DNA of 64,000 bases from Bispira polyomma (taxonomy: Eukaryota), in NCBI GenBank assembly GCA_965649765.1, contig OZ287757.1:12214001-12278000 (forward strand), read 5' to 3'. The stretch's first letter is position 1. Each line of letters opens with the position of its first letter. The notes under the pieces are model-generated. The model made no database searches. It was not told where the DNA came from and saw only the letters and a program-made list of their open reading frames with translations. Shown in pieces: positions 35,201-61,620 of this stretch. A program made the position numbers and the translations under genes.

Positions 35201-36776
35201 CGTTACTAAAGCCTTAAAGAAAGCTGATGGAAGGGTTGTTTTCTGTAAATGTCTGTTAGATCTACATATCTTAACCCTTTCAACCCCGAGGGAAAATTTT
35301 CGACGGGAAAATGAAGGAAATTTTTTCAGGTTATAAGTTATTTATAGTTAGAGTTACTAAAACACACAGCACAGACTACCTCCAGTATTCAATAACGGGT
35401 TAGAATCACTAAAACACACAGCACAGACTACCTCCGGCATTCATTAACGGCCTCATGTATAATTTTTTTAAATAGAAAAGTCTGCTGTACTTGAGGCACT
35501 GAAGGATAATATAATATTTTTTTTTTTTGGGGGGGGGGGGGGGGGGGTGTCGACTGCTATCAGACAACACAAGGGTAGAAATATTTATTTTAGTGTTGGC
35601 AATTAATTATAAAGTTTCGCTAACCAGTTTCCAGACATATGGGCAACAAAATCTGGGATATTGATTTTCCACTTTGGGAGTAAATCCTAAATGTACTGTA
35701 AATATCGTCAAAAGAGAATAAATATATTCAAATGTTTTCAGGCAATATGAAACATATATATTTTTACTGTTTTTACCATTGATAAAAGCAAATACCGCTT
35801 ACCTACACCTATAAATATATATTTGGTAGGGCACAGAAAAGGGGGAAACTGAGTCAGATATCTGAATCCAGGTTATAAAACTTACAAATAGAGCTTCTTG
35901 TATTTAGGTTAACCAGTCTGGTAATTTAGAACTTTTGTCTGAGAAAGAGAAAAACAAACTTAGCAGACAACTTGCTGGTGCTTTATTCTGGGCAGTTCAT
36001 ACTCGTCAAACACACCCCAACTCACACTGACAAACCAAAAACTCCAATGAAGGCAAGTCAAAAATATACAAAACACAAAAAGTATTTGTACTTGTGACCA
36101 TTCATTTAATAGATTTTTCCGTGCTGAATTTAAATATGCAATCAGATCTTTATATATCGCACTTTTCACCAGAGATAGGACGGAAAATGTTCAGAGTTTT
36201 AGTTTAAGTCAAAGCTTGATATTTTGGGAAGAATAAGGGGGTCGTTTGGTGGATAAACCTGCTTCAACAAAACTTGTTTGGTTTGTGGTTTTTTTTCAGT
36301 CTCAAGACAAAACACATGCCATGCTTGTGTGGTAAATGGCATCTAACATTTAAAGAAAGTTTTTTTTGGTTAATTTTTGTTCAAAAGAAATCAAGAGGTA
36401 GAAGGAATTTATTCGTATATTACCTGGATTTTTGTGGAACAACCTGAGCTAACACCCAAGGCCCTCTATACTTGTAAGTACAAGGATTTTCAAACAACTA
36501 AATCTATTTTACCAGCTAGTTGAGACTTAATACTTTTGCTACAAGTAAGCAGAATTGTTTACTTGATCTCCCTTGACTCCAGAATATCCAGATTACAAAT
36601 CATTCCTAACATTTAAGAGACAACCCTGTTGCCCGCTCTTGACATGACTTATATGACAGTAAGCATTAAAACACCCTATTATCACTCACCCGTGCTCCTT
36701 TTTCTCCGATACATCTACAACCACTTGCTGTACAGCCACTGCAACGGCTCGGTAATACTTCGTCCCTGCTACTTTG
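5311..36776 (-). CDS. COL4A2: Type IV (basement membrane) collagen, alpha2/let-2-like chain; partial multi-exon gene (7S domain plus N-terminal helix, 15 exons seen, about 560 aa with one alternative exon)
   Basis: GT-AG exons join in frame to give CxxCxxxxCxCxGEKGxRG, [24 protein letters not shown] and an interrupted Gly-X-Y helix. The alpha2 call rests on remembered similarity to let-2/COL4A2; NC1 is not in the window. Confidence 0.85.
6350..6649 (-). CDS. COL4A2: Collagen IV exon (300 nt, phase 1/1): [21 protein letters not shown]...GVPGQK
   Basis: tttttcag acceptor, gtgagc donor, Gly-X-Y; missed by the ORF track. Confidence 0.93.
7007..7205 (-). CDS. COL4A2: Collagen IV exon (199 nt, phase 0/1): [22 protein letters not shown]...GDEGPP
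   Basis: ttcccccccag acceptor, gtaaca donor, Gly-X-Y. Confidence 0.92.
7250..7479. mobile_element. About 230-bp MITE family with AGAGTAAGGAATCTAAAATTCGCCAC ends (partial copy)
   Basis: Related copies at 14402-14630, 27108-27333, 37836-38070, 51938-52186 and 53195-53435. Confidence 0.7.
7691..7866. mobile_element. Short CAGT-ended MITE family (Tc1/mariner/pogo-like ends)
   Basis: tacagtgaaacccctt...aagaggttcac; related copies near 17035-17212, 17252-17405, 41130-41300 and 59695. Confidence 0.6.
8103..8680. repeat. 39-bp minisatellite, about 15 copies
   Basis: Unit gacatggcccagattcaatgagatcccataacatcaagt; explains the repetitive ORF 8065-8646. Confidence 0.95.
8681..8832. repeat. 10/20/30-bp compound tandem repeat next to an exon donor
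   Basis: cttcacacag-accacatgac-accagatgac blocks. Confidence 0.85.
8845..9000 (-). CDS. COL4A2: Collagen IV exon (156 nt): [19 protein letters not shown]...GLTGPPG
   Basis: actttcccag acceptor, gtgagt donor. Confidence 0.92.
9505..9857 (-). mobile_element. L2/CR1-type LINE 3' end remnant
   Basis: Minus strand encodes [14 protein letters not shown] and frameshifted [14 protein letters not shown], typical of this ORF2 C-terminus; second copy at 41355-41717. Confidence 0.75.
9909..9971 (-). CDS. COL4A2: Collagen IV exon (63 nt): [21 protein letters not shown]
   Basis: attacag acceptor, gtgagc donor, perfect Gly-X-Y. Confidence 0.92.
11282..11335 (-). CDS. COL4A2: Collagen IV exon (54 nt): [18 protein letters not shown]
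   Basis: atctag acceptor, gtaagt donor, perfect Gly-X-Y. Confidence 0.92.
11545..12319. mobile_element. Non-autonomous piggyBac-like element (TTAA|CCCTTTC...GAAAGGG|TTCA)
   Basis: Short TIRs with a TTAA-type target; deleted relatives near 35271-35580, 40894-41130, 46754-46971 and 51799-52335. Confidence 0.6.
14402..14630. mobile_element. About 230-bp MITE copy
   Basis: TIR gtaaggaat...attccttac. Confidence 0.75.
15190..15378 (-). CDS. COL4A2: Collagen IV alternative exon C (189 nt): [63 protein letters not shown]
   Basis: atatcag acceptor, gttggt donor, phase 0/0; homologous to 16713-16886 and 20537-20725. Confidence 0.88.
16713..16886 (-). CDS. COL4A2: Collagen IV alternative exon B (174 nt): [58 protein letters not shown]
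   Basis: tactaacag acceptor (weak pyrimidine tract), gtagag donor, phase 0/0. Confidence 0.82.
17212..17247. repeat. (TA)n microsatellite between two MITE copies
   Basis: Read directly from the sequence. Confidence 0.9.
20537..20725 (-). CDS. COL4A2: Collagen IV alternative exon A (189 nt): [63 protein letters not shown]
   Basis: gtttcttag acceptor, gtgaaa donor, phase 0/0. Confidence 0.88.
23210..23272 (-). CDS. COL4A2: Collagen IV exon (63 nt): [21 protein letters not shown]
   Basis: accctag acceptor, gtaagt donor. Confidence 0.92.
23744..23902. mobile_element. MITE with CAGTAGAACCTCTATTATC TIRs
   Basis: Related copies at 42191-42680 and 46277-46476; half-ends near 6793 and 10770. Confidence 0.7.
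24028..24186 (-). CDS. COL4A2: Collagen IV exon (159 nt): [53 protein letters not shown]
   Basis: ttttccccag acceptor, gtaagt donor. Confidence 0.93.
24758..24866. mobile_element. About 110-bp palindromic MITE (ggccgtattcactaa...ttagtgaattacgggcc)
   Basis: Copies at 38974-39087 and about 53820-53922. Confidence 0.75.
25041..25230. repeat. 50-bp tandem repeat, about 4 copies
   Basis: gtgaagaagaacttgatcggaattaacaaaggtctacatt... Confidence 0.9.
25396..25458 (-). CDS. COL4A2: Collagen IV 7S exon (63 nt): [21 protein letters not shown]
   Basis: Diagnostic 7S GCNGT (Cys plus N-glycosylation sequon); ttttctag acceptor, gtaagt donor. Confidence 0.95.
25474..25703. repeat. 25-bp minisatellite, about 9 copies, 15 nt from an exon acceptor
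   Basis: Unit ttaccattagaaaccagaatcacag. Confidence 0.92.
27928..27972 (-). CDS. COL4A2: Collagen IV 7S exon (45 nt): [15 protein letters not shown]
   Basis: ctttttcag acceptor, gtaagt donor. Confidence 0.93.
28678..28812 (-). CDS. COL4A2: Collagen IV 7S exon (135 nt): [45 protein letters not shown]
   Basis: cttttttcag acceptor, gtaaga donor, perfect Gly-X-Y. Confidence 0.94.
31800..32265. repeat. 68-bp minisatellite, about 7 copies
   Basis: Unit ccacctccctgacctgattctatcaaaaccaaaatacatctc...gtaatatcga. Confidence 0.95.
34336..35213. mobile_element. Non-autonomous DNA transposon, Kolobok-like (TTAA target, GG...CC ends)
   Basis: Perfect 18-bp TIR ggctttagtaacgtaaac / gtttacgttactaaagcc flanked by TTAA on both sides. 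Confidence 0.8.
36690..36776 (-). CDS. COL4A2: Collagen IV 7S Cys-rich start exon (87 nt): [29 protein letters not shown]
   Basis: Four-Cys 7S motif followed by GEKG; ttttatag acceptor, gtgagt donor; phase 0/0. Confidence 0.92.
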
Positions 36777-38474
36777 CTATAAAACGGAAAAAAATGCGAG
36801 AAACAATGTTTATTATTGGTTCAGCAATTGTTGTTAGTTTGCTATAGTGAAAGGAATATAAGGGAGAAACAATGTTTGTTATCATTGGCTTAGAATTTGA
36901 GTTTTCAGCCCCCGCCCCAAAGATAAGCTCCTAATGCCCTGCTGTAAATCATACAAAGTTGGGAAGACGACTAATTAAATAAGTATAGTGAATGTCATTA
37001 TTATGAACACATTGATGTGTACAATATATACACTTTAACTATAAATATATAATTAAAATTTGGAAAGAACAATCTGATGATATAATTCTAATTGAATTTA
37101 CTCTGGAGAGAGAGTTTTGGAAAATTTGTATTTTTAATCATCTTTTAATATAATATTTTACAAAAGCATTAAAAATAGTAAATTGAAGATCTGCTTCTCT
37201 CTCTTATAACGTGGAGATCAAATACAGGAGAGTAAATGGTAAAATCAGTGTAATTACGACTCGACATAACTACAAACATTACTGATAACTATTAAGATAT
37301 ATAATAAGAGGTATAATTATTTAAGTTTTTCTTTAAAACAAACAGAAAAATAAATATATAGCTGTAATTTACACAAAATTAAGCATGCTTGATTATATTT
37401 TCCCAGAGTACATTTTAATACGGTATATGAAAAATGGTTCACACATCATAAACGATTTGTCTACAAGATACATACCCTTAAAACCGTAAGCAGAATTTCC
37501 ACTTAACAGGTCGATTTTTAAAAAGAAAATTCCTCGGTGGGATTAAGACATGTGCATTAACAGACTTCTGCTTAAAGAGGCAAGCGAGCATGTTTGGGAT
37601 GTTGGGGCTGGTTTTCAAAATTCATGGTCTATGTCTAAGTTTGCTGCCTATAAAACGCAGGCCTGAAGTGCATTCACCTTCCCTAAAAATACTTACTACA
37701 TCTATTATAGGAGTTTGTATGACCTCCCACCTTTCAAGGAGATAGATAAATATAGAAACCCAATTTCCCTTGATTGAAGGCCTATGGAAGGAATCGAGGC
37801 CAAGTTTTACATCATTACGTCTACTTGGATATCCCGAGTAAGGAATATACACTTCGCCACTGTATCTTAAAATTCACCACCCTAGAAAATGTTGTGTTTT
37901 TGGTTGAATTGTGGGCAATATTTGCCACAAATTGAGATTTTTGGTGACTATTTTGCCCTTACATACTTAAATTCCAGCTATTTTTCACCACTTACTAATG
38001 CGTTGGCTTAAATATTTAGGGGGGGGGGGGGGTGAATTTTAAAAGAGTGGCAATATTTTAGATTCCTTACCCCATTTTTCGGAGACTGCGCTTTGGAGTA
38101 GCAAATCCAACAATTTTTCAACAGTTATTATCTAAATGTTACTGCATATTAAGTGCGAGCAGAATACATGTATAGTTGGTTGTAATAATATATAAAGCCT
38201 TTTTAAATTTGCAAATTTTCGCTGTGTTCACAGTATATGTGTGGTATAATTTACACAGGTAGTTGTAGGAACTCTGATTAGTGCTGCCAAGCAAATCAAT
38301 CACATACATTTAGTTCTGTGTTCTGATGTCAAAAAGGGCAGTTGTTATACAACTACAATCTTACAGTTTTACAGCCTTATGGAATTACTCATCTAGGTAT
38401 ATGTATATACCTTCTATTTGCCCTGGGGCCCCTGTATTCTGCAAAAAGATCTCAAACTCAACATAGACTCAAAC

Positions 38475-38976
38475 CAGGGCCTTATTCTCGAATGTATACT
38501 CAGCTCAAACTCATGGTCAACTAAAATCTGGATTCTCTAGAACTTCGGATACGTTAAACATATCTAAAATCTGACTGCATATTTGAATTCCGTGTTAAAA
38601 GCTCTATGAATGGTCACAAGTAGAAGTTATTTCCATGTAAATGATTTCCACAAACCCTATATTTGAGTTGAGTATGAGTTTAAGCCGAGTATACGTTCGA
38701 GAATACGGGCCCAGAACTACTCATGTACATATGGAACATTTCGAACGTATACTCAGCTTAAATTCATACTCAACTCAAATACAGGCCATGTGGAAATCAT
38801 TGTACATGGAAATAACCTATACTTGTGACCATTCGTTTTAATAGAGCTTTTAACTGTGAATTCAAATATTAAGTCCGATTTTTTTTATATATTTACCGTA
38901 TCCAGAGTTATGGAAAATCCAGACTTGAGTTGAGTAGGAGTTTGAGCTGAGTATACATTGAAGAATACTAGCCCTG
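38475..38976. mobile_element. Two adjacent, oppositely oriented copies of an about 240-bp MITE
   Basis: tattctcgaatgtatactcagct...gagtatacgttcgagaata ends; 38475-38714 and about 38740-38976 have reverse-complementary interiors. Confidence 0.75.
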
Positions 38977-41354
38977 GGCCTGTATTCACTAACAGACTTA
39001 GCCAAGGCTTATGATTAAATCTAGCAGCAAGTTATACTAGATTTAAGCCTAAGTCTTGGCTAAGTCTGTCTGTGAATACAGGACCTGGACAGTAATATAT
39101 TACATGTGTGTACAACACAGCTATGGAAGTAGTAAACAGATAAACTGACCAATTGTCGTGACCATTATTTACCATTTACTACTACAGATGTTTGGTGGTA
39201 AATACAGTACGAAAATTCTATCATCTGAACCAGAGATTTCGGTTCAGATAATAGAAAAAGGAGTTAAGAGCTATTTTTTGAGGTGGTAACTTCCTGATAA
39301 CTTAAAACTTCAGCAAAGGTTATCAACAGACATGAAGCATTTGCATTTTTTTTTTTTACACCGGGTTTATTCTATCATACAACCAAAGTCTTGTACAAAC
39401 CTTTCATTCTAGCTTCATACAGAATTTGTTATTTTTTTTAAACCTGTGAACGGGAATCCTATATTATAGCTTCTTCTTTTTGTTATGTGTTTTTTTTTCT
39501 TCTAAATTTCTGTTGCTCTTCTAAAAAGGGTGATAAAAACCGTTTAAAGGACATAAGCCCCTCCTAAAAAGGCAATCGTAAAAACCAGACCCCCCCCAAA
39601 TAAAGAAAACATGGTACTTACCGATTGTTCGTATTTTCACTCCAAATGATGATCAAGTACTTACTGATTCTTTTTGTAATAGTTCAAATTTAAAAAAACA
39701 CACAAATAAATCAACATTTTCTGCGTGGCGGTGTATATTGTGTCAATAATAGAATGCATCACATACATAAGAACATGCTTAGTTTTTTTTTTTTTTTTTT
39801 TTAATACTTAATAATGTAAATATTTGTATTTTATATACAGAAATATTACAAAATTGGATAGATATTCAAATGCAATATTACATATTACATCAAACATTGT
39901 TTTTTTTTTTCAAATTCTTCCATTTGAACAAAACATAAACAATATATTCATACACATCCATAAATGTATGAAATGAAACTCGCAACACTTTGGGTTTTTT
40001 ATTTAACATAAAAAAAATTTAACAATACTTTTTCCTTTTTTGATACATTACAAAAATAAAATTTCCATGCATATTTATAGAAAAAACATATTTTTACAAT
40101 TGAATCAGATCTTAGAGCCTTTATAAAAACAATGTATTTAAGATTCAACGAGATAACCAGACTTCTGTGAAAGGATTCACGCCTTAACTATCACTAAATA
40201 TAACTTAATACTATTATTGTCTACTTCTTGCAAAAGATCCCAAAAAATCCATACCAAACTACATACAGACATACTCGTACAATAGGAACAGATTTGCAGT
40301 GCTTTGACTGACACTTTACCTCTTTGTGAAAAATAGATAAATTCAAAAAAATATTTATCATCTATTTAATTTTTAAAAAAACATTAGCGCTTCGAATGAA
40401 AGGTAACACAATAAATAGATCACATTGGATACCAACCCAGATTTCTGACTCATTCTATTGTAGTAAATATATCATTCACATGTGTAAGAGATGCTTTACA
40501 GTTGTTTTTTTTCATAAAATCTCAAAACGCCCGACTTTAAACGACAGGGTGTTTTTATTAGAAATTTAAAGCTTTTTAACTGTTCTATTTTTATTTGTGA
40601 CATACTTTTAATAAAGTAAAGTAAGAGCTTTCTTGTATAGTGACTAATACCTGTCTGCCCAAAGACCTAGTGCAAATACCGTACCTTCTTTATGGAATCA
40701 ATTTTTGTATTTACATTGAAATAATCATCCCGCAAAGAATAGAAGTATAAAGAATGGCAGACGAAGTGTATTTTTTTTATACTTTTTGTACAATAGTACA
40801 TATACAAACATTATTTGTTATGATACTTTACCGTAAAGCTCAAAACACATGCTCAACAAAATGAAAACATTACAAAAACGACATAGAACGTTCATCCCCT
40901 TTTAAATCGAGCCTCAAGAGAAAACTATCGCCGGAAACTGAAGGCCATTTCAGGGTGAAAGGTTACAGATAGCTAGAGTCACTAAAACGTGGACTACTTC
41001 CGACATTTAATGATGGGTCTCGCATATAATGTTTTAAACAAAGAAGTCTGCTGTACCAATTTTCTATTGCAAGGAACTGAGGGTGACTAATGTGATATTT
41101 TTAGGGTGTCGACTGCTTGCCAACCTCGGGGGTTTATATCGACCCTCAAGGGACCAATTTAAAATACTTCTACTTAGCAGGATTTCCACTAAACAGGGTA
41201 GAATTTTAAAATGACAGAATTTTGTGGGACTACAGAGTTTTTAGTCACAGCAAAAAAAATTGATTTGATCAGAGTTCAACTTAAATGGGGGTTCAATTGT
41301 AAATGTGCCTTTATTACTGAACAGTATATTATCATACTTTTGTGTGAAGACAAA

Positions 41355-41717
41355 ATCTAACCTAACTTTAAAAGTGCTTAACTCTGTGCTAGCAGATTCT
41401 AAGGCGCATGAGACAGAAAATCATTTAGAAAATTTCATATATCCATTTGACGTACAGGGGTCGTGACTATGGAGACACCGGAAAAAGGTAAGGAGGCTAA
41501 GGTGGAAAAGCCTTGCTGAATAGGTAGGTTTTGAGCTTTTTCCTGAAACAGGCAAGTGAGGAGGCAGTGCGAATATCATGAGGCAGATCATTCCACAGAT
41601 TAGGAAAATCATGAGAAAACATTGTTGAAATGTCTTTTTGGCTTGTGAACTGAAAGGTAGTCGTGTTTTAAGGTAGGGACACTTGAGAAAGCATTTTCTG
41701 GCCTACTACACCTTGTA
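41355..41717 (-). mobile_element. L2/CR1-type LINE 3' end remnant
   Basis: Colinear with 9505-9857. Confidence 0.75.
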
Positions 41718-41968
41718 TTTGAATTGGGATATTTAATGTCCACTCTAGTACCTGTTTAGGTTATACTGGGACGGATAGTTAGAAACGCTGGAGGAAACAC
41801 TGCATACAGTTGATCAAGGTTCTGCACTGAAACCAGCGGCCCACAGTGAAGAACTACCACCTTTCCCACATAGGCATCGATGTGAGTCGAACTCACGCCG
41901 CCCAGAGGTGAGAGACCAGTGATTGTGAAGTGCAATGCTTGCTAACCACTAGGCCACCGCGGCCCCCA
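41718..41968 (-). mobile_element. Full-length tRNA-derived SINE with 14-bp TSD
   Basis: A box tggcctagtgg, B box gagttcgac; TSD tactacaccttgta at 41704-41717 and 41969-41982. Confidence 0.9.
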
Positions 41969-42717
41969 TACTACACCTTGTAATGCCATGTATAGGTATA
42001 TGTACACAAAAACCTGGGATGCAGCACTTGTTCTGGGATTTACAGTAAAAAAAAACAAAACACAAATTAAAGACTGAGCACAAAGTTTGAGCTTTTACAG
42101 AAATGAGAATATCAAAATACAGAATAATTAAGACATTGAAGAGAATGCCAGAAAAGACTAATCTTCTATTACATATTTAAATGATGTCTATACAGTAGAT
42201 CCTCTATCATCCGAACACCTTAGGTTACTAGAAGGTTCATAGAAAGAGTAGAAATATGCAAATGTGTTAGAAGCGGAAACGTGTGTTAAGAGAAAACTGA
42301 ATAAAATCACTTATATTGGAAGTTCATTCATTCATTATCAAAACTTTTTTTTTTTTTTTGGGGGGGGGGGGGGGTTGTTTCTTGTTTGAAAATTATTTAT
42401 CTTTTTCAAGGCGTGGGAGTAAATCAGGAGAAGTTTGTATAATAGAAGGTAGTGCTGTACGTTTTAAAAGAGAAACCTATATCTCGACATACATACAGTA
42501 GAATCGCTATTATACAAACATCTTACAGTACGTAAACAAAGCAAGATTTTGTTAAAAAATTGGAAGGTTTTTTTTACCTCCTGTATTAAAAAAAAAAAAA
42601 ACATCAGAAAAACCTCGATTGGGAGAGTGAAAATTGAATATTTGGATAATAGAATTGCTGATAATAGAGGATCTACTGTACAATATATAGAGATATATAC
42701 ATGTTTATACATAAATA

Positions 42718-42723
42718 TTTATT
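42718..42723 (-). promoter_or_regulatory. Candidate polyadenylation signal AATAAA
   Basis: About 36 nt after the TAA of exon 42760-42987; the hexamer is common in AT-rich DNA. Confidence 0.4.
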
Positions 42724-42759
42724 CTGCTGCATTTTATCTTCGTGTGTACACAGATATTA

Positions 42760-42987
42760 TTATAGATAATTCCACATATCTCCAGCCATGCAGGGTGGAT
42801 TCCCCAAACCAACCGATTCTTCGATTTCTCCTCCCTTGTTGGACGGTTGCTCCGGTTGTTCGACCACTGGCTCCTCAGGTACTGGCACTGGGACGTCGGT
42901 TCTGCCGCCATCCGGTTGTGATGGGATCGGTTCATAGTCATAATTGTATTCCTCCACCGCTCCAACGGGCGCAGTCTCCACGGAACC
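42760..42987 (-). CDS. Array last exon: GSVETAPVGAVEEYNYDYEPIPSQPDGG...NKGGEIEES(VGLGNPPCMAGDMWNYL*)
   Basis: tttttcccacatgcag acceptor; TAA at 42760-42762; possible internal donor TCG|GTTGGT at 42814/42813. Confidence 0.8.
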   Translation of the reverse strand, partial: GSVETAPVGAVEEYNYDYEPIPSQPDGGRTDVPVPVPEEPVVEQPEQPSNKGGEIEESVGLGNPPCMAGDMWNYL

Positions 42988-45900
42988 CTGCATGTGGGAA
43001 AAATGGTGTACACTGAACAGATGTGTAGTAACCAAACAGAGATAACATATCGTATTGAGAGAAGTTATTGATGTTGAATATGTAGGTTACAAGAAATCGA
43101 TCAGAATACATTTACATTTAAAGCCCCTAAACGATTGGGATGGCTTGAATTTTTTTTTAATTTAGCGTATTTGTAATGATGGCAGGCAGTGTGTGAAATT
43201 CACTGTGGCCCAGCGCCACCGCTTAATTGAAAAAGCCACTTCTTTTCAAATTCCGGTGGCCCGTTTGGCCACCATATTTCCGGGGCTTTGACTTTTTTTA
43301 CTACACACGCTACAGTAAACTTGTGATACCAGATTGTTCCATTTGCTTCGGCACGCATGCGCAGATGAAATTTATTGTTGAATAAAAGGAAGATTTTATA
43401 TATTCTTAAGTAGTCATATATGTGATCTTTATATATTCTAATTAAACGCATATTTTACTAACTTCATCTATTATTGCCCAGTGCTCTCACTGCTAACCAG
43501 TGTTTCACAGTTAAATCAACCCCTCTTGCCCACTCATTCGAAACAAATAAGAGCGGCTGGTAAATTTTCAGCCCATTTTTTTGAAGTAACACAATATATC
43601 TTTTATTATGTATTAAAAAAATTTGTTTTAAGTTGTATTCTGAAATAAAATTTATAGCTTAATTTTTTTAAGTATTGGGCAACCTGATTGTAATCCAAGC
43701 CACCACACTTTTTCCGCGAAGTTCACATACTAATGACAGGGTACTCATACACCCCCCTCCCCACACACCCTCTCCAAGGATCTGTACACACCCTCACCTT
43801 CACCACTCTGTATCTAGAATACTCATACATACCCCTCCTTCCCCATGGATCTTTATCCCCCTTCACCTTCTCCACTCTGTATCCAGAGAGTACTCATACA
43901 TCCCCCTCCCCTTCCCCATAGATCTGTATCCCCCCTCACCTTCACCACTCCATATCCAGTGTACGTATACACTCCAGGTCCCTCCGCTGTCGCCTCTCCA
44001 GACGTCACCTCTCCAGATTCCACCTCTCCATCAAACTCTCCCCCTGAGAAGACTGGCTCCCTGTTTATGTCTGTCACTGTGGTGGATCCAGACTCCCCAG
44101 ATCCGTACACTTCAGTAGAGCCAGAGGCATCAAATCCACGGTCTCCAGAAATGGAGAATCCTGAGCCTGATCCTGAGACATCAAATCCACTGCCGCCACT
44201 CTGGGAAAGTTAAACGATGATATAGCTATGAATATAGACGATAGTCTTATTTTGACAAACAAGTTCTTATTTGTTGTTAAAATGGACTTCTACAATGAAG
44301 AAAACCTTTCAAAATACAACAAAATTAAATGTGCTGAAATATATCAATTTGAATACAATATACTCACTGGGTAGACAAAGTATGTGTAATCCCCTGATCC
44401 AGACTCCCATCCACTGCCGGAATCCTGGAGAGAGAAACAAACAACACATTACTTGACATGTTTATTAGATTCAATAAGAGCTTCTCCATAAAATGTTTAT
44501 TGTTTGACAGTAATTGTACTTGGGAGTATCATAACTCACATATTAACTTGCCTGCCAGTATTGATCAATGTGATGAAATGTGTTCCAATCAAATCAAATA
44601 TTTAGAAAAGTTTGGGAAAGTATTAAAGATCTCAGAATACTTACCACCCCTTCATAGGGTCCACCAATAACAACCTCTTCTCCTTCATCCCCTCCTTCAG
44701 GAGTTACCTGGAATGTTAACAGACACAGCATATATAGTATTCCATTGTATTTTGTCTTTTTAGCGTGCCGTCTTGATGCAAGGCATCGACTGAATTGCAG
44801 AATTTCCCGAGAGAGACATTATTTTGAATTATAAAAGTAAGTAAGGAAAATATTTGCTGTTATATATTTAAAGTGAACTGTCTACCTGTCTACCCTCTAC
44901 TAAATATACACCTAATTAACATATTCATTACCTAATTAACATAAATTATATTATTGTTTATTCATATTTGATATCACTACATCCAAGATGGCGTCCCTCC
45001 AGGGAAATTCTGCAATCCTGCCGAGGCATCTTCCAAAGTGCAACAACATAATTAATTGACCAATCGAGAAGTCCAACGAAACATAGCCAAAGTCATAAGG
45101 ACGGATGTGAAGTGTACAGGGAAGCAACAACAGAGTCAGTTAACCAATAGAGACGTTCAAAAACATAGCCAAGATCGTAAGGAAGAATCTAAATGTGGCT
45201 GTGTGTGGGAAGGGGACCAAGTGGAGTAAGCAAGTTTGAAGAGATGGGTTTCAAGTATGTTTCTGTACCTAGATAGTGTTTCAGGTGATGCTAACTCAAA
45301 AGGGAGACCATTTCATAACATAGGGGCAGCAGTAGAGAAAGCTCTCCATCCAGCCTTCTTGGTGGGTCTCACAGCCTTCTTGGTGGGTCTTACAGCCTTC
45401 TTGGTGGGTCTTAAAGCCTGCTTGGTTGGTCTTACAGAAAGTAAAGTCTTAGCTTCAAATTCATTGGTCTCTCACCAATGTGGGTTCGAATTTGGTTTGA
45501 TCCTTCATATGGGAAAGTTTGTCAGGTACTTTTCAGAGTTCGATGGTATACACAGTGGCTTTAGCACTGGTTTCTTCCACCAATGAATCTGGCCGTCGTG
45601 ATATGACCTAAGGCGGTTATGAAAAGCAACGTAAAACCCAACTAAATTCCAATTAAAATTTTTAGAAGCATTACATATTTAATTCTTGGTCCAAAACAAT
45701 AAGTTTATTAAAATTTATATTTAAACTTTTTTTCAAAACCTTGAAAAGTAACAATCATTCTAAACTATAAATCTGTCTGTTTGATTTACAACTGTGGTAA
45801 CAAAAGAAATCAAACATTTGCAAAAAAGAAATGAATATTTGGATTAGAGAAGTTCATATGATGGAGTTTTGTAATCTACTCACCACTTCTGGGTAGGTCA

Positions 45901-48900
45901 CCACTCCTTTCTCACTAATGATCACATCAGCCTGTAAAATAAACAAATGAAGAACTCAGAGCTACAGGAGAAACCGTGTTAGGTCGAATCTAGAGCTATA
46001 ACAAGTTGTTCTACTAAAGAAAAATAATAAAATTTTTGTGGTGTCCATTGCTTGCCATCAGACATGGCTTCTGGGGAGTAACAAATGCTACTAGTCGACA
46101 ACCTAAGGGTCAAGGGGTCGAATGGGTGGGCGATATTTTCTCAACAGAATTCTACTTAAAAGGGGTTCAAGTGTACACTAATTGACAATACAGATGTCTA
46201 TTTGTTTTGTGTACATAAATATGCATTAACCAGAATTATAATCTGACTGGTTAGTGTAAATGAACTAATTACTAAGGTAGAACCTGTATTATCCGACCCT
46301 CTATTATCCAACCTTCTATTATCCGAATAATTGATTATATCGACCCATTTGGACTAGCCCAAACTTATTTATTGCTATGTTTTTATACTAAAATGCCACT
46401 TCTATTTTACAGACCTTTTATTATCCAAACAAATTGTCACTCTCCCAAGATGTCCATATAAGAGAGGTTCTACTGTACATATAAACAGAGGCCGGAACTA
46501 CTTTTGTGACTCACCCGACCATCCCCTCCTTCTGTAAATTCTGGGGCCGTTTCACCCTTCTCTCCAGTTACTACATTCACCTGAAAATATAGTGCCGTCA
46601 CTTGTTGAACTTTTGTGGTACAATTTTTTTGAATATTTTAAACAAATTAACCAAACAAACCCCTATACTCAACCTATAATAAATCCCCCATTTTTACACG
46701 GATATAATTTGTTAATAGACAGACCGACATAAAACTCATATAAACTTCATATTTTAACCCTTTCAATTCCAAAAGAAAACTATTGCCCGGAAACTGAATG
46801 GAAATATTTCGGTAATAGATTACAGATAGCTGGAGTCACTGAAAGACACCCCACAAGACTATACTTCCAACAATTACAAATTAACTCACGTATAATTTTT
46901 TTTAAACAGGGAATTCTACAATGAAAAATATAATAAAATGAGTGCTAGTCGACAACCTAAGGGTTGAAAGGATTCAAATCCACCGCTTTGCAAACTAGCT
47001 TCACAAAACTGCACCTTCCAGTAATATATAAACAATTACATAATAATAACACATAAACCAATTATCAGTCTCTTAAAGGTTTTGGGAAAAAAACGGGATA
47101 TTTAATCCATTTTTTCAGCAGTTATGGTACTATATAACGGCACTATATAAGATGTTTTGTTCACTTACTGTTTCATCACCTCCTTCAGTGTATTCCGGAG
47201 CCGTTTCTCCCTTTTCATTTGAAGGCACAAACACCTGAAGATAAGAGTCAAACAGACGATATAACCTTTCACCTACTAACTGTAGTATTACCACGATAAA
47301 TATCTAGTTTCATACTCTCTTGTCAGCAATTTGTTAGTCCTAGAACTTATATCTATTACTTTATTTTTCTTCAATTCCTCTCTATAAGAAATTGTTAGTA
47401 CAGGCGACGTCCATGTTTAAAAAATTATATGCGAGACTGTTATTGAATGCCATAAGTAGTCTGAATTCATCTGTAACTTATTGCTAAAAATATTTTGTTT
47501 GTCAATCCATGAAATACTTACTTCTCCCCACACATTATATTGTTGTAAATCGATGAATTACTTAAGTGTCACACCAATTAGTTACTATCCTTACTAAAAA
47601 ATAATTTTCTTTGTCAATCCATGAAATACTTACTTCTCCCCCTACAATTCCTGTGTACTGGGGACCTACTGGGCCTTTCTCCTCAACATTCAGCTGCAAC
47701 AAAAAAAAAAACAACAACACAAAACTATTATACTGTACAATTGCTATGTGCAATTTAATATCTTACTAAATAAAGAAAACATTCAAAGGTTATATATTTA
47801 ATTCTCTCTTAAAATTTTATGGTATTACAGCATAAAACTTCTATTATCTGAACTTTCTGTTATCCCAGTACACGATTGTCATGATCTTTTGCTTATCACT
47901 ATTTCCCAAAATTCATATTTTCAAATTGTCTTTCCTAATGTTTTAGTAAACCTTCTATTATCCAAACAGAATCAAAGCTAGGTGTGTTGTTGAGATAACC
48001 AAGGTTCTCCTGTCACTGATGCGTTCAATAGCATCATAAATGCCTGTATTGTTACCCGCTCTGTCAACCTTCTAGTATCCCTTACATCGGTGTATTGGCT
48101 CCCCAAACTAATTAAATACCTCTTGTGGGTTTTTTTTATCAAGTCTGAGGTTGTTTTCATTCTGAAAAGGGTGCCGCTATCACTGTGTGAATTACTAGCC
48201 CTGACATTTTGGCTGTATCTTTGCCCATGTATAATTAACCTCATGTGACATTGTAAAATCCTTTATTATCACTCACTCTATTTATAAAACCTCCTATTAT
48301 CACTCACTCTGTGTATAAAACCTTTTATTATCACTCACTCTATGTCCAAAAACCTTCTATATTATCACTCACCCCTGCATTGCCCCCCTGGGAATATCCT
48401 TGTGCTTGGGCAGATTTCTCTTGTGATTGACGATACTACAACACATAAAAACAGAATACGCTACAAAAATCATAGATTAATTCACACTTTCAATAATCTA
48501 CCATCACATGAAACACAAACAATACAATCAAATTTGTGTTTAAACGCAAAACAAAGTAAAAACACTTCTGTTATCCGAATTAATCATGTCTAAATATTCA
48601 GTTTAATACACTCTTTGCCCCTTTAACGATTTTCCTATTGTTTATTTACTGAAGTACTTATTCTATTTTGTTAATTGACAGTTTATATCCACACAACATT
48701 GGTTCTACTAGATTAACTAATATTCATGTAATTTCCTATTGTGATTAAATTTTTTTGAATAAGAATAACTATAAATTCTTATATATCCTAACATATTGGG
48801 TGTACATTGATTCAACTTGTAATAAAAAGGATAGAATTATGTAAATTATATTGCATAAACAGGACATCTGCCAAGTTATCGTTGTTTCAATAATAAAGGT

Positions 48901-51900: not shown

Positions 51901-54900
51901 GCCTCGCATATAATTATTTATATAAGGAAATCTGCTGTAGAGTAACAAATCTAAAATTGGCCACTGTATCTGAAATTGGCCACCTACAAAATGTTCTGTT
52001 TTTTGTGGAATTGTGGGTAATATTTGCTAAAGTCGAGATTTTTGTGACTATTTTGCCTTACTTACCCAAATTCCATTTATATTTTCGCCAGTTTTTAATT
52101 TATTCAGCCTAAATTTTAGGGGTGGCCAATTTCAGATACAGTGGCCAATTTCAGATACAATGGCCAATTTTAAATTCCTTACTCTACTAATGAGTCCCTT
52201 TTTCAAGGAACTGAAAGGAAAATAAAATACTATTTTTGGGGTGTGTCAGCTGCTCGTCAATGACAGATATAGCCTGTGGGAGTAAGAAATGCCATCAGCT
52301 GCTAGTGTTGACAAATCAGAGGTCGAAAAAGTTAAAATTGCACCCTATTTATTTTGTTTTTTTGGGGCTAGTGGTTTCTCTTAAGAAGTAATTCAGCTTG
52401 AGTTACCTTCAAGTCCAACTTCATAAGTTAAAAATACCCACCAACACATTTATATGACCAAAATTGTTTGACAAAACACACTACCACTTGCTGACATTTC
52501 ATACTATATATAAATACCTACCCTATCATCACGTCCCTGTGCATATTCAGGATTAGGACCTTTTTCATCCGATGCTCTGTACCTCTGGAAAGAGAAAACA
52601 ACACAGATATAAACATTTATACACACAAACCTTGTATAGTGTCTAAACTTCTGTTATCTAAATGGTTGGAATTGATGAGACACAACAGAGTGTGTTTGGA
52701 TAACAGGGATTCTGTTATCTGTGTCTATGTGTTGATATCATGTATATATTTTTGTGGTGGTTTTTTTTTTTGTATTTATACTAACAAAACAAACACCAGA
52801 TTGACTGACAAACACTAAAAAATATCAACAAAAGAATATTGACACAAAGGAATTATTTCTAGCTAAAAATAAAATATTTATTTTTTTTCCGTGACTTTAG
52901 TTAAAAAAAAAACTTAACACAAAAGGAAAAACCATTCTTATGGGATGTAAAATTAAGAACATATTGATATTTTTAAAAGAAAAAAAAAAAGATTCTTTTT
53001 ACAAAAGACTTCGGTGTTAAATTTCTATTACTGCACGTCAAATTTCTCATAGAAGAATTGGATATCGGGATGTGGTGGTGAGGTTTAGATGGGGACTTCA
53101 GACAATATACAGAGTGCAATATATAATATTTCTTAATCTATTTTTATTTTCAAGTTTAATAAAAAAGTCTATCAGACAAGTTCTTTTATACTTAAGAGTA
53201 AAGAATATAAAATTTGCCACTTTATCTATAATTTGTCACCACCTACAAAAATGTTGTGTTTTTGGGTGGAATTGAGGGTAATATTTGCTAAAATTGAGAT
53301 ATTTGGGACTTTTTTGTCTTATTTACCTAAATTCCAAGTTACTTTTTCCACCAGTTTTTTTTTTTTATTGATTTAGCTTAAATTTTGGGGGTGGTGAATT
53401 TTAGATGCAGTGGCGAATTTTAGATTCCTTACTCTGTGCATTGTCTGTTATAACCATCTTACGAGATGCACGACTCTCACCTTTCAAAATAGAAGTTTTT
53501 TAAAATAGAAAGATAAGAAAAGACAATTTGGGGTAGAAGGGATTGCTAAAGAATATAGGAACACCAAGCAAAAAAGGCTATTATAATATAACTAGTGTAC
53601 AAGCTTGTCTAAATTAAAGACACATGATACGCTCACAATATTGTTACGTCATCACCTTTTTGGTTCTTACTTTTTAGTGTTGTTTTTTCCCCCCAGACCA
53701 CTAAACAGACCTGGTTCAACTCTCAATGTTGATTTTATGCCAGACAAAACAGACATCCACCAACACACAAACACGGACTGACACGCCGATATTCATGAAA
53801 GCTCAGGGTCTAGAATTGACTGATGGACTTAGCCAAGTTTAAGGCTTACCGTAAATGTAGTATACCTTTGTGCTAGATTTAAGCCTAAAACCTAGCTATG
53901 TCTGTTAGTGAATACAGGCCCAGATAAAAATGGTGCTGCTCAGGTTTTCAATTAACAATTGTTTCTTTTAAGATGTAGTTACAATTTAAGGCAACTAATC
54001 TCCATAGTTTACACATAGCAGGAGAGTGTTTGTTTTTTTCGGTTGATTAAAGTTCCCCAACGCACAATACAGATATTACTAGTTTTCCTATTGGTTATTC
54101 TTGTTTTACAATGCATTTGTTGATTATAGGGACACTCTTGTTGTAATAAATTTATTTTTTACAACTGACAATGTTTTTTACAAGTGGTGAATTGTCCAGA
54201 CAAATTGGGGTGACTATTTAATGTGTTAGGGTGTAGTAGTTACTCACCCTGACATCCTCCCTGCCCCGAGCATACTGTCTGTCAGGTCCTTTCTCCTGGG
54301 ACTGATGATAACGCTACAAACATATAGACAAGGCTGAATTTTTTTTACTTTGGATATTAAACGTCCACTCTAGTACATGTTATATTGGGACGGGTAGTTT
54401 GAAACACTGGAGGAAACACTGCATACAGTTGATCAATGTTCTGCACTAAAACCAGCGGTCCACAGTAAGGAACTACCACCTTTCCCACATAGGCATCGAC
54501 GGAATTCGAACTCACGCCGCCCAGAGGTGAGAGACCAGTGATTGTGAAGCACAATGCTTGCTAACCACTAGGCCACCGCGGCCTCTAGACAAGGCTGATA
54601 ATTGGTTCATCTTCTACATACTACTACTGGTCAGCCAGTGAATTTCACCACCTAAAATAAAATCTTTAAATTTGACGATGGGTACCCTACTTTTTCCGGT
54701 TTGTGGGCATTCCAACCGTATTTTTAAGGTTTCTGTGGTTTAGCAACAACAATTTTTAAGATAGACTCCTAGGGCAGGTGGAGTTGATGGTTTAAAATAT
54801 ACTGAAATAAATATAATGAAAAATGTGGCCATTTCTATGCTAAAAGTTCATGTTATGGCGGAAAACGATTTTAAAACAGTTATTATAGTTTTGTATGAAG

Positions 54901-57900
54901 AAAACGAAATGACTGCATTATCCTCAGAATTAAAATAGGATACCTCAAAGTATGAACCTAAAATTTTTAGCACAAATAGCTGAAAATGTTGTCGCCATCC
55001 CCCAAAAAACAGAGAAGTACCATTATCGAGTATCCAAAAGTTAGTAAATCTTCGACTTACCCTGATATCCTCCCTTCCAGTAGCGTATTCTCTGTTGGGC
55101 CCTTTCTCCTGTGACTGGGCATATCTCTGATCCTCCCTGCCTGTGGCATACTGAGGCCCCTTCTCTTCTGAAGGTCGGACGTTTATCTGAAAAATACAAG
55201 GAGGACAACTCTATTATAAGAACACCTTGGGAGAATTAACATCTGTTCGTGTAACAGAATGCTCGTCACAAAAACAGTGACAGAGGAAGTTTTAGTATTA
55301 AAACAATTTAGAGTAAAAGTAAAAATAATTTAATAACTCATCAAATACATCTGACTATCTGACAGTTAATGAGAAAAAGAGCAAGGAGTTTGTTCAGATA
55401 ATAGAAGTTTCATAAAATACAAGAGTTACATTTGACATTGGAAATCTTTTTCAATGAATCAAATATTTAAATGATAAAAGTTTGGGTAATTATTAGTCAA
55501 TAGACAAACAGACAGACCGAGAGTTTCAGTCAAATACCCACCCTATCGTTTCTGCCAGTGGCAAACCTCGGGTCTGGGCCTTTTTCATCAGAACGGGCAA
55601 AGTTCAACTAAAATGTGGAACAAAAAAACATTTATAAAACTGAAAAAACACACACAAATATCACCCTGTGGCATTTTCTTACCACCAGAAGCAGTGAATA
55701 CCCCCCCCCCCCCCCGCCAAAAAATATTACCGGTATGTAATTTTTCTTCAATTCCTGACAAAGAAAATGCAAAATGCAGCAGTAATTCCCTGTTTAAAAC
55801 ATTATACGCGTGGCTGTTATAGAGTACTGAAATTAGTCTGTGGTTTATTTTTTTAAGTGACACCAGCTATCTCTAATCTATTACCCGAAAAATTTCCTTC
55901 AGTCAAATACCCACCCTATCGTTTCTGCCAGTGGCAAACCTCGGGTCTGGGCCTTTTTCATCAGAACGGGCAAAGTTCAACTAAAATGTGAAACAAAAAA
56001 AACATTTATAAAACTGAAAAAACACACACAAATATCACCCCCTGGCATTTTCTTACCACCAGAAGCAGTGAATACCCCCCCCCCCCAAAAAAAAATATTA
56101 CCGGTATGTAATTTTTCTTCAATTCCTGACCAAGAAAATGCAAATTGCAGCAGTAATTCCCTGTTTAAAACATTATACGCGTGGCTGTTATAGAATACTG
56201 AAATTAGTCTGTGGTTTATTTTTTTAAGTGACACCAGCTATCTCTAATCTATTACCCGAAAAATTTCCTTCAGTCAAATACCCACCCTATCGTTTCTGCC
56301 AGTGGCAAACCTCGGATCTGGGCCTTTTTCATCAGAACGAGCAAAGTTCACCTGAAAATTGAAAGAAAAAACCCCATGTAAAACAAAATATAGCAATGCA
56401 GCCAAAAAGACTGCAAAAAGGTAATTCCTGCATCTACCTCTTCCACCATTGACCTTTGAAAAAATATTTTTGCCCAATCAAATTGCTCAAGACAAAAAAT
56501 TTAAGACGAAGAATCTTTGACAATACCAGCTATGTATTATTTAAATGCTTTAGTTTACATCTTATAATATTCTTTAGTAACTGACTATAGCAGTTCTGTA
56601 CACTCAGAAACTTGCTTTTGTGTAAGAATATCAAGAAACTTGGTTCTACTGCGATTTCGACCGTGGCTCTTGCAGATCTTGACAGACAGAGAGTCTCAGT
56701 AAAACACTTACCCTATCATTTCTGCCAGTGGCAAACCTTGGATCTGGGCCTTTTTCATCGGAACGGGCAAAGTTCAACTAAAAATTAAAAGAAAATACAA
56801 AATATAACAATCTAGCCAGTAGCCATAAAGACTGCAAAAAAAAGTAATTCCAACATTCTTCCACACCCTATAATATTCTTTACTAACCGACCATATCAGT
56901 GCGAGACCTAGTGTATATACATCCACTACTCACCCTGTCATCTCTACCGGTGGCAAATCTTGGATCGGGTCCCTTCTCATCGGAGGGACGAAAGTTCAAC
57001 TGTAAAAAAATATGTGAAATAAGTTGTTGGTGAAAATTGACAGTTGTAGTCAGTAAAGCTGTGTAGTCCCTAAGCTGTAACAAATAATAATAAGATTTAA
57101 AAGTGGTGCCCCCAATATCTGAACTTATTACACGAACGTATTACAGGTGTAGAATTGTTAGAGGACGCGACAACCATAGCGAACAGTAACTGTAAATATA
57201 AAGATTTTATTTATAAAACAAGTAATCTGACCCGTTTTCAATGCAAAGTTTGTATTAAAATGAAATATAGTGTCATAGATACTTTATATTTTACAGATTA
57301 CTTGTTAAATGTAACAAATTTTACATTTTAAGTTACTGTCCGCGATAGCTGTCGTGTCGGCTAAGCTGTCCAACCGTGTATACAAAATATTTGATGATGC
57401 TAATTGATATTTAATAATTTTGTTTCCTACATAATTCATTTTTGGCAATGTAATATGGGTTATTAAGGGTTAATTGTAATTAGATTTTTAATCAGTACGT
57501 ATAGATGTACCTTCATCTGACATTTAGAGCGCTAATTAACCCTTTCCTGACTGTAACAGTCTACTGCATCAGTTACTGTCATTCCTCTAACTGAAGAGAG
57601 AGGCTTTGAGGATGACACCATTCTTGCTCAAGGATGTTATCCCACCAATGAAACTAGTGGCTGGTACTGGGAATAGAACCCAGGACCTTCTGATCATCAG
57701 ACCGGCTCCCTACCTGACCACTAGGCCACGAGGAACCACAAGAAGTTGGTTAACAACATCCAAAGTAACTTACCCTGTCATTTCTACCCTCAGCAAATCT
57801 GGGATCTGGGCCTTTTTCTTCAGATGGACGGAAATTTAGCTGAAAATACAGACACAAAATAACAGTCATCTGTTATGTAGACTCAGCTAGTGAATGCAAA

Positions 57901-60900
57901 CTCTCAAACATTTGGACATAAATTAAACACAGTATAAAAGTTTAAACATTTGTTAGAAGCAAGGGGCACAATACATAATTCTAACAGCACACGGCTGTCT
58001 CAGCGACTCTAATTAGGTGAACGATGCGGTAAAATTCACCATATACACATATAGACTAAATATGTCTGTAGTGTACTTGATGCCCAGTAAATAATATAGT
58101 TTGTTCAATAATGTGACTTTTGCAGTAAATACAGCCAGAATCAGATAATTATGTTAAGTTCTCATATGAGAATGGGAATAACACTTTTTAAAGCTATGAT
58201 ATACAGTAATTTTGACCACTCTTGGGAGTATCGAAACACTCAGGCTTCACCTTTGTGCTACTACGCCTCCAATCGTGGTAAAACAAGAATTGTTCAGTGA
58301 ATAATAATAACTTTATATTCTGTGGTTTAAATAAGATTTTCTCAATGTTCCAGATGCCAGATATTATATTTCAGAAACGAATAAGTGTCCGCAAATGGGG
58401 GCAATGTCAGCAGCCCATGAATATCAAGTTTGGTACAGTAAACTAGACAATTCATATAAATAACAAAGGCTGAACTTACTTGGAATTCTTTAATTGTCTA
58501 AATTTTGACATAAAATTTTTTTTCGTCATAAACATTCACGCACAGACAAATACTTTATAAACCTTCTATTATCCAAACAAAATTGTATTACTATCAAAGA
58601 GTTCAGATGAAGAAGTGGGAAAATTTACTCACTCGGTCGTTTCTGCCTGAGGCAAATCTGGGGTCGGGACCCTTTTCCTCTGATGGACGGAAGTTCAACT
58701 AAAAAGGTAAAAACAAAAAACACCTGTTAACATATATGACCTTAGATGCTGAAAGTGACATAGAAAAATTCCGAACAAATATAGACTCATTCCACATTTT
58801 GATCACGTAAGCGGAAAAAATATACAAAATGTATTTTTAACATTTGAATACATTTTTTTATTTCCTATTTTCTTAATTTGTGTTGGAGATAAGTGAAGTT
58901 AATTTACATTTTGAAATGCCAACACTGCTGTTACATGACCAAGTGTAAAACAGATATTTTGGTCCATAAAAGAAAGTGATCGATAACAGAAAGTTTGACA
59001 ATAGTACTGATTCTTGTAACTGCAGTAATTTTATAACACTACCCTTTGCACTAAGATTTGGCCTATGTTTTTTACACAATAAACAGATCTTTACCCCGTC
59101 CGATCTCCCTGTAGCAAATCTGGGGTCAGGACCCTTTTCATCAGATGGACGGAAATTGAGCTGAAAAAATATAGGGGCAAAATATCAGTTGATTTGTAGA
59201 TGTTAAAGTTTAATTTATAACAAAATAATGCAACAAATATATTCCAATATAGAATCAAATCTAGTCCCTTTTTCTAGGTGCTAGATCCTCCCTCTGGGAG
59301 AATTGAAAGCATCAACCAAAAAGATTAACATTCAGCGCAGGGAAAAGGAGGCCTGGGTTGGCAGGGTCGGGTTATTACAATATCTGAACACAATGTATCT
59401 CTCCAAAATTTTATATTATAGCTTCCACTGAATTCCTTTAAAATCAAACATTACACACCTGATCTTCCCTGCCACGTGTATATTGAGTGTTGGGTCCTTT
59501 CTCTGAGCCAATCTGGAAGATATCACACAAAAACAGCTCCAGATTATTGTATTGTACATTTTTAACGCACACTATAATGTACAGACACATAATAAGTATT
59601 GTGTTAGCTTACCAAAGAAATTGTCTACTTATGATCTTGCCTGAGTTTTTATATTTGTCAAGTATATTAACAATCAATGGTTTACTATAGATTTACAGTG
59701 GAACCACTTTTAAGTTAAAACCTCAAGGAGCCAGAAGAAATACTTCTACTTAATCAGGATTTCCACTTTTTGGAGCAGATCCAGATAAAAGGGCGGATTA
59801 AAAAAAAAATATTTTCAATGTTTTTGCACTGTGGCTCCTTGGCAGATGTATGCAGTCTAGCAAGTACTATTTCATAATATCTAAGATTATAATAAAGATT
59901 ATAATTACCAATTCATCAGGTTGTCCTCTGGCATATTCTATAGTATGTCTCTGTAAAGGATTACAATACAACTATTACTGCTTTGTTGGACCCCGAGAAC
60001 TGAAACCTTAAGGGCCCAGGGGAAAATACCTCTACTTGAGTACGATAGTCACTTGATAGCTTTTGTGGAAAACTATAAAGTTTTTTGGTATCATTAAAAA
60101 AAAATGTTTTCACTACTATTTCGATGTACAAGAAATTTCAGCTTTTGATTACATATCTTTACTTCTGACAATATGGGTTTCTGCATCATCTATTGTTGTG
60201 GAAAATTTAGCTAATAAGACTACTGAAAAGAGAGTAATTTCAGGTTGAGTGTTTATGTGTCCTACATTTTCATTGGCCAAAAATAATACATAAGCCTGTC
60301 AATTAACTCACCCTGGTGTCAATATCTTGTCTTCTTGTCTCTGCATAGTTGATCTGTAGAATGACAGCAGGATATTGAGACATTAACAACAAATTGACAT
60401 TAATTACTTACACAAATACAATACCACCGATGGAGAATAATTCCACTATACTGAGGGATAAAACACTTTGACACACTTTGATGACGTCATAAATGACATT
60501 TTGCAACATCTGATTACATTATAAATGAAAAAATATATTTTTCTTAGTGTCAAATGCAGTATACATCACATAGAAGTTATTCCTGTGTGCTGAGGGAGCT
60601 ACACAATATTTTATACTGTTGATTGCTGGCCGACAGACATGGCACGGGCGAATACAATTGTCCGTCGACTTCTAGCTGATAGACTAGGTCGTCAAGAGGT
60701 TTAAACCTCCTTTTTCTTTAGGCAAGTACTTGGTGCCAACTGGTGGTTTTAGATTGACCAAAATTAGTATTGTATGTAATTATCTACGAAATGCACAAAC
60801 ATCACTTACCCCCTTCTCATTTTGTGCTCCAACCTGTGGGCGAAAGAAAGCATAACATAATGTACACAATAAATATATATATATAGATTGTATGTTTAAT

Positions 60901-61620: not shown

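Follow-up and report, generated by a model that had tools for sequence, protein, structure and literature searches.

A phase-0 exon array inside a collagen IV alpha2-type gene of Bispira polyomma, with a candidate RNA bridge around it

The window, a 64,000-nucleotide (nt) stretch of the Bispira polyomma genome (1.035 Gb in 75 contigs; contig OZ287757.1, here C10, positions C10:12214001-12278000), contains an array of short exons upstream of the first 7S exon of a collagen IV chain. We conclude that this array is real, selected and lineage-restricted coding sequence inside a collagen IV alpha2 gene, and that it can supply a non-collagenous head with regularly spaced lysines. A unique inverted 19-mer flanks the array, and we regard as evenly balanced a model in which pairing of its two arms, as an RNA bridge, would give the canonical chain, while the open state would give a long, cross-linkable and glycosaminoglycan-bearing head. 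The gene order, the reading frame, the selection on the repeats, the lysine motif with its spacing and the inverted 19-mer on which the model builds are all observed in the DNA.

The exon array and the gene that contains it

Twenty-nine exons of 24–261 nt run from 61620 to 42814 on the minus strand, all AG/GT-bounded, in phase 0 and stop-free, which bears out the array described in an earlier reading of the letters alone (the sequence-only reading). They add up to 1998 nt or 666 amino acids (aa), and a 30th exon beyond the window brings the head to 677 aa (Table 1). The core repeat block (52522-59160) comprises 11 exons with 12 units of about 22 aa each, with the consensus aromatic-x-x-S-[DEQ]-EKGP-[DN]-P-x-[FY]-A-x-GR-[NDE]-D-R. 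When scanned with a splice-site matrix whose training set was limited to 45 Gly-X-Y (collagen) exons, the 19-kb array yielded 28 symmetric open exons, a density of 14.7 per 10 kb, whereas seven control stretches yielded 0–1.7 per 10 kb. Most array exons scored like constitutive collagen exons, with weaker sites at exons 59950, 59160 and 46580. Among eight 66-nt core copies the proportion of synonymous differences (pS) was 0.70 and that of nonsynonymous differences (pN) 0.087, with 20 of the 29 variable columns at third codon positions, which indicates that the array repeats are translated and under purifying selection.

A non-functional array, arising from echoed splice sites, duplicates in decay or faulty assembly, would be consistent with the donor echoes seen at 47634 and 43940, the latter echoed twice downstream and out of frame, and with the two identical copies in a tandem repeat whose copy number is unconfirmed by the public DNA contigs. 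Such an origin is extremely improbable, since synonymous sites are near saturation with few replacements, which largely refutes it, and since symmetric open exons are in about ninefold or greater excess. Independent DNA also holds the sequence: three public runs cover most of 54000-59900, with no differences from it in the long contigs listed. The tandem duplication itself is 371 bp long (55525-56371, 96% identity) and carries three nearly identical repeat exons, of which two do not differ at all, and exon-end copies with donor sites recur in the next intron at 47533, 43878 and 43809 on the minus strand.

The host gene encodes an NC1 domain with two C4 repeats and a Cys-rich 7S domain with an Asn-Gly-Thr site, followed by an interrupted Gly-X-Y helix whose exons run from 28812 past the window start; together with a head-to-head alpha1-type partner, with coding starts about 1.2 kb apart, these features identify it as a collagen IV gene. 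It was read as alpha2-class from NC1 and 7S motifs, not from a tree (EKAHSQDLG versus ERAAGQDLG; C-x-x-EKG versus C-K-G-T-KG), and named alpha2/alpha6 matches were returned for the chain. Its first 11 coding bases and exon 2, located 18 and 11 kb past the window end, encode a textbook 20-aa signal peptide, MKLWFSVLLVLCIFSHSVLA, that ends in phase 0. The sequence-only reading had placed the first exon of the collagen upstream of the array and had asked for a head-to-head alpha1 gene beyond 64000, and both are there; its statement that 36777-42700 holds no signal-peptide exon also stands, as we found no convincing signal-peptide or coding-like exon in 42700-36777. No start of the array's own was found. 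Because the signal peptide lies upstream and 7S downstream, the sequence places the array within the alpha2(IV) transcription unit.

Two candidates were rejected in this search, namely a signal-peptide candidate at L001:1312-1378, which has a weak donor and a poor hydrophobic core and gave way to exon 2 at C10:12288881-12288929, and a candidate exon at 41542-41456, which is repeat-like and unlike the array. The minus strand of L001:1312-1409 is an exon-like, GC-richer stretch with a weak donor.

In a second animal (ENA ERZ24900295) we found an orthologous gene whose exons are laid out in the same way, with a 7S exon orthologous to that of the host gene. No array was detected there in the 15 kb upstream of 7S, an interval in which the host gene has 12 exons, and the signal-peptide exon of the orthologue was not located; the absence of the array near 7S is suggestive. 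The repeat, the 7S exon and the last array exon have no match elsewhere in the B. polyomma genome. The sequence-only reading knew of no described collagen IV with this architecture, and our literature search agrees, having found none with a comparable N-terminal extension, although full-length invertebrate chains were not surveyed. In Drosophila, the extension of Cg25C is short, at about 45 aa. A search of a representative library with NC1 returned mostly fragments and no full-length annelid chain. Among Logan proteins, P0402 (1090 aa) combines VWA, collagen and C4 domains in an unusual collagen IV-like architecture.

Of the five collagen IV genes in the B. polyomma genome, four form two opposed pairs on C10 (the second pair at C10:35.99-36.10 Mb) and the fifth lies on C5 (C5:64.17 Mb). 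The alpha1-type partner (C10:12302700-12357600) has introns of 16 and 34 kb near its 5′ end and no cassette array, and the 34-kb intron contains a pair of long inverted repeats separated by about 27 kb. Further down the host gene lie three homologous, apparently mutually exclusive phase-0 exons (20725-20537, 16886-16713 and 15378-15190 on the minus strand), and the orthologue in the second animal has two such exons (L035 near 13284 and 13546). Annelid-type erythrocruorin linker genes are also present in the genome, which fits an annelid.

Table 1. Features of the array, its flanks and the host gene; numbers above 64000 continue the window numbering, and adding 12214000 to a window coordinate gives the C10 position
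Feature	Position	Strand	Remark
Signal-peptide exon, head-to-head alpha1-type gene	C10:12297292-12297369 (= 83292-83369)	+	
First coding bases, alpha2 gene	C10:12296102-12296112 (= 82112-82102)	-	11 nt
Exon 2, alpha2 gene	C10:12288881-12288929 (= 74929-74881)	-	completes signal peptide
Arm 1 of candidate bridge	C10:12288763-12288781 (= 74781-74763)	-	99 nt after exon-2 donor
30th array exon	C10:12278801-12278833 (= 64833-64801)	-	cassette beyond window
Intron exiting window	61621-64000	-	continues to 30th array exon
Five lead-in cassettes	61620-61588, 60833-60810, 60353-60312, 59950-59909, 59512-59459	-	
Core repeat block, first exons	59160-59095, 58698-58633, 57839-57774, 56999-56934, 56777-56712, 56351-56286	-	
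Core repeat block, later exons	55980-55915, 55607-55542, 55186-55061, 54313-54248, 52584-52522	-	55186-55061 holds two units
Five Arg/Glu/Tyr-rich cassettes	51689-51657, 51101-51060, 50180-50127, 48958-48926, 48435-48373	-	dibasic sites; 51101-51060 is 42 nt
Five acidic cassettes	47693-47634, 47234-47169, 46580-46515, 45931-45884, 44707-44645	-	diverged EKG units in 4/5
Ser-Gly block	44424-44368, 44200-43940	-	16 Ser-Gly dipeptides, acidic context
Last array exon	42987-42814	-	Pro/Glu/Val linker with YNYDYE stretch; in-frame donor G/GTTGGT at 42813
Arm 2 of candidate bridge	37446-37428	-	651 nt before 7S acceptor
First 7S exon	36776-36690	-	phase 0, Cys-rich, ends C-I-G-EKGAR, strong splice sites
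Gly-X-Y exons in window	28812-5311	-	GCNGT glycosylation site exon 25458-25396
NC1 exons	C10:12195073-12197833	-	downstream, outside window

Composition of the head and its predicted cross-linking sites

The 677-aa head is cysteine-free, rich in Gly, Glu, Arg, Asp, Pro and Ser, and probably disordered. Its lysines stand mostly in one setting, with 20/23 in E-K-[G/A/S] (18 EKG, 14 EKGP), and the bias persists outside the recent core copies (10/13). Successive lysines of this motif are 19–22 residues apart in 17/19 intervals, including across the diverged exons of 48–66 nt, and the retention of this period across exons of unequal length suggests that the exons are read in series.

The lysyl-oxidase site of animal fibrillar collagens is X-K-(G/A)-P in lysine-poor surroundings, with KGP as the invertebrate norm, REKGP in collagen II and KGHR as the helical acceptor (PMC5120351). 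Both features of this site occur in the head, namely X-K-(G/A)-P in non-helical sequence and lysine-poor surroundings (3/23 lysines outside E-K-[G/A/S]), and the core EKGPDP is identical to that of the collagen II C-telopeptide, EKGPDPLQ (PMC10280293). The uninterrupted fibrillar helix with COLFI propeptide that flanks a telopeptide is absent, as the chain is a collagen IV, and thus the head would at most work like a telopeptide, with cross-linking predicted from the motif. Helical KGH was present at 6/71 of the G-x-K-G sites of the host chain and 6/51 of the alpha1-type partner, compared with 0/65 in the second-animal orthologue (one-sided Fisher p ~0.018, calculated by hand), which gives modest support for a cross-linking role. 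About eight lysyl-oxidase domains were found in the genome, in a tandem cluster of about seven at C11:13.56-13.78 Mb and a single gene at C5:27.87 Mb, and LOXL2 is reported to cross-link collagen IV 7S (PMC7619536). On this evidence the balance tilts somewhat towards a lysyl-oxidase role of the head. We detected no more than two COLFI loci genome-wide.

The Ser-Gly block contains 16 Ser-Gly dipeptides in 106 aa with a net charge of -14, clustered beside acidic residues, and is a candidate glycosaminoglycan attachment region. Clustered Ser-Gly in an acidic context is the typical setting for such attachment.

Basic residues in the head could also point to a precursor or propeptide cut by convertases, which would either release amidated 17-mers or shed the head at the dibasic cluster 51657-50127 and leave a near-canonical chain. 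The cleavage pattern would be G-R followed by an acidic spacer in the core repeats (R-x4-R and R-x-x-R), and the head does hold 14 GR-[NDES]-D motifs and 8 dibasic sites, a G-R pattern resembling that of amidated-peptide precursors. However, the repeated G-R and basic sites, present in 13 upstream units, are lost in the diverged downstream units, in which EKG and the aromatic residue persist. Neuropeptide precursors, furthermore, do not typically have a single unit per exon, a Ser-Gly block or a collagen promoter, and acidic P2 residues are poor for furin, all of which makes processing of this kind quite unlikely.

Joining to 7S and the candidate RNA bridge

The intron between the 42814 donor and the 7S acceptor measures 6037 nt. 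Under a codon model built from the remaining array exons, the last exon scored +0.73 bit/codon as far as its donor at 42814 and the sequence beyond scored -0.47, the latter within the range of true intron starts, and this stop of the coding signal at the donor favours onward splicing to 7S. Exon 15378-15190 also uses GTTGGT as the donor at its homologous end. Downstream of the array, 7S alone offers a good acceptor followed by coding-like sequence. We therefore consider a fused array-7S chain likely, and a free secreted form may exist alongside it. Of the extension of up to about 670 aa put forward in the sequence-only reading, the arithmetic stands, as an in-frame extension of about 670–680 aa is possible, while the joining of the array to 7S is predicted from the splice sites and the coding signal. 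Skipping would also allow the signal peptide to join 7S directly (phase 0 to 0), which fits the short form only.

We compared the first 2 kb past the signal-peptide donor with the last 3 kb ahead of the 7S acceptor for complementary stretches and obtained one perfect 19-nt inverted match, with its arms 37 kb apart. This 19-mer is unique within 204 kb at three mismatches, and genome-wide there are exactly two exact copies, the two arms. Their duplex extends to 20 bp at -29.4 kcal/mol, compared with -16.6 and -16.8 for the next-best partners, and each arm has one good partner, with no docking/selector series. Such a match would be expected by chance 1.4e-4 times in the searched windows and 0.03 times anywhere in 54 kb. 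The near-perfect helix of at least 12 bp in flanking introns by which long-range splicing duplexes are recognised is present, and pairing would shorten the 38-kb intron to about 750 nt, with all 30 exons and an AATAAA hexamer enclosed. RNA duplexes are known to skip human DST exons 47-52 as a block and to be coupled to polyadenylation in Drosophila Nmnat, and tabulated spreads reach 14 kb (PMC6027157). A working RNA bridge appears very likely. In the second animal, the one other species compared, only repeats with four mismatches were found.

An origin of the arms as transposon terminal inverted repeats was rejected, with two copies only and no target-site duplication. Just one further inverted pair is locally unique, and this control turned out to be the end of a transposon with >5000 genomic copies. 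An 885-bp element at 34332-35217, resembling a miniature inverted-repeat transposable element, has 22-nt terminal inverted repeats with >5000 genomic copies.

Phase 0 throughout the array led the sequence-only reading to propose that any subset of cassettes can be skipped, and combinatorial splicing, with tissues choosing subsets of the 30 exons to make many head lengths, would also use the weaker sites at 59950, 59160 and 46580; the host gene has its apparently mutually exclusive exons as well. The proposal is arithmetically true, but a uniform phase 0 is what insertion into a phase-0 intron entails, and most sites are as strong as those of constitutive collagen exons, with a single good partner per arm. 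Strong splice sites, a kept lysine period and a unique duplex around the block argue for an all-or-none switch, so that subset skipping is probably not the main mode and combinatorial choice is very unlikely.

Several points weigh against fusion, bridge and cross-linking. No public RNA run holding the locus was found, and all splicing is inferred from DNA. The bridge candidate rests on the sequence of one species, its 37-kb spread is well above the 10–14 kb of the longest tabulated duplexes (PMC6027157), and co-transcriptional splicing of strong array exons could pre-empt the pairing of its arms. The splice sites of the last array exon are weak (3.4 and 4.0 bits), with a donor (4.0 bits) above only 3 of the 45 training donors, and read-through past 42814 meets two stops after 17 codons and AATAAA at 42723. 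Lysyl-oxidase specificity is not set by short motifs (PMC5120351), KGH is also found in an amphioxus chain (4/16) and is thus not specific, and the one readable fibrillar C-telopeptide of the worm lacks EKG and carries a furin-type REKR (L028:389-589). Finally, exon-by-exon searches of Pfam, PDB, the ESM Atlas, a set of 5.8 billion proteins (with a 42-aa exon) and JGI metagenomes found no homologue of the head, although these searches were length-limited or blind to small clusters and do not show its absence.

The weak last exon also opens the way to a free protein. If every array transcript ran on past 42814 as far as the stop near 42763, the product would be a secreted protein of about 714 aa without fusion; one promoter would serve both products, the bridge would yield canonical alpha2(IV), and the free protein, with one C-terminal cysteine, could still be a matrix cross-linker linked by lysyl oxidase. 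The weak donor and acceptor, the double stop with a polyadenylation hexamer 40 nt later and a post-donor GC of 0.44 that exceeds most introns are in line with this, and the duplex encloses the polyadenylation site as well, like that of Drosophila Nmnat (PMC6027157). However, the read-through tail is intron-like in its codons and rich in residues that the array lacks, comparable read-throughs and hexamers are common in true array introns (17 or more codons in 6/26; AATAAA within 120 nt in 3/26), and the strong 7S acceptor is open to every phase-0 donor further upstream as well. An exclusively free protein is therefore unlikely.

Proposed mechanism and comparison with known systems

In the fused-chain model, pairing of arm 1 with arm 2 would loop out the 37-kb block and join the signal peptide to 7S, giving an ordinary alpha2 chain. 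In the absence of the duplex, the exons with strong sites would be included largely as a block and the weak last donor would be spliced to 7S, giving an alpha2 chain with a long N-terminal head. After secretion, lysyl oxidase would turn up to 20 E-K-G lysines into aldehydes, which may react with KGH lysines in the helices of other collagen molecules, and the Ser-Gly block would carry glycosaminoglycan, such that every 7S node of the network would gain multivalent cross-links of the fibrillar type, and hydration, from the long form. Our more specific proposal, that a single 20-bp duplex over 37 kb toggles between the ordinary chain and a head with about 20 cross-linkable sites, maybe for the stiff, hydrated, cartilage-like skeleton of fan worms, is tentative. 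Collagen IV is viewed as a fixed 7S-helix-NC1 design throughout the animals, and an optional telopeptide-like head would, if true, be a new way to tune basement-membrane mechanics, with the duplex as an unusually long-range splicing switch. As a speculation, the head is a molecular candidate for sabellid cartilage matrix (PMC9020720).

The host chain resembles alpha2-type collagen IV (COL4A2, C. elegans let-2) in its signal peptide, Cys-rich 7S ending in C-x-x-EKG, GCNGT site, interrupted helix and two C4 repeats, and its alpha1 partner corresponds to the head-to-head COL4A1/2 pair that is conserved across animals (PMC12141075). Described collagen IV chains start with 7S (PMC12141075, PMC6744580), whereas in the host gene it can be preceded by 677 non-collagenous aa. 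The arms resemble the DST exons 47-52 and Nmnat duplexes, in which complementary intronic arms of 14–22 bp loop out an exon cluster or polyadenylation site (PMC6027157). The DST duplex spans 10 kb and 6 exons, compared with 37 kb and 30 exons for the duplex described here, a candidate from sequence alone. As systems of N-terminal isoforms, the collagen XI variable region and collagen XVIII are both comparable. The latter, also a basement-membrane collagen, carries glycosaminoglycan and occurs with either a short or a long non-collagenous N-terminus (PMC6744580), but is a multiplexin without NC1/C4, with folded TSP/frizzled heads and no repeat array. LOXL2, which cross-links the 7S dodecamer, applies the lysyl-oxidase chemistry proposed for the head to the N-terminal collagen IV node (PMC7619536), although it uses lysines inside 7S and no added repeat array. 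Fibrillar telopeptides (collagen II REKGP/EKGPDP) share E-K-G-P in a non-helical, lysine-poor setting and helical KGH acceptors with the head, a likeness that is limited to the motif and probably convergent; they have one site each, whereas the head would carry up to 20 in tandem on the N-terminus of a network collagen.

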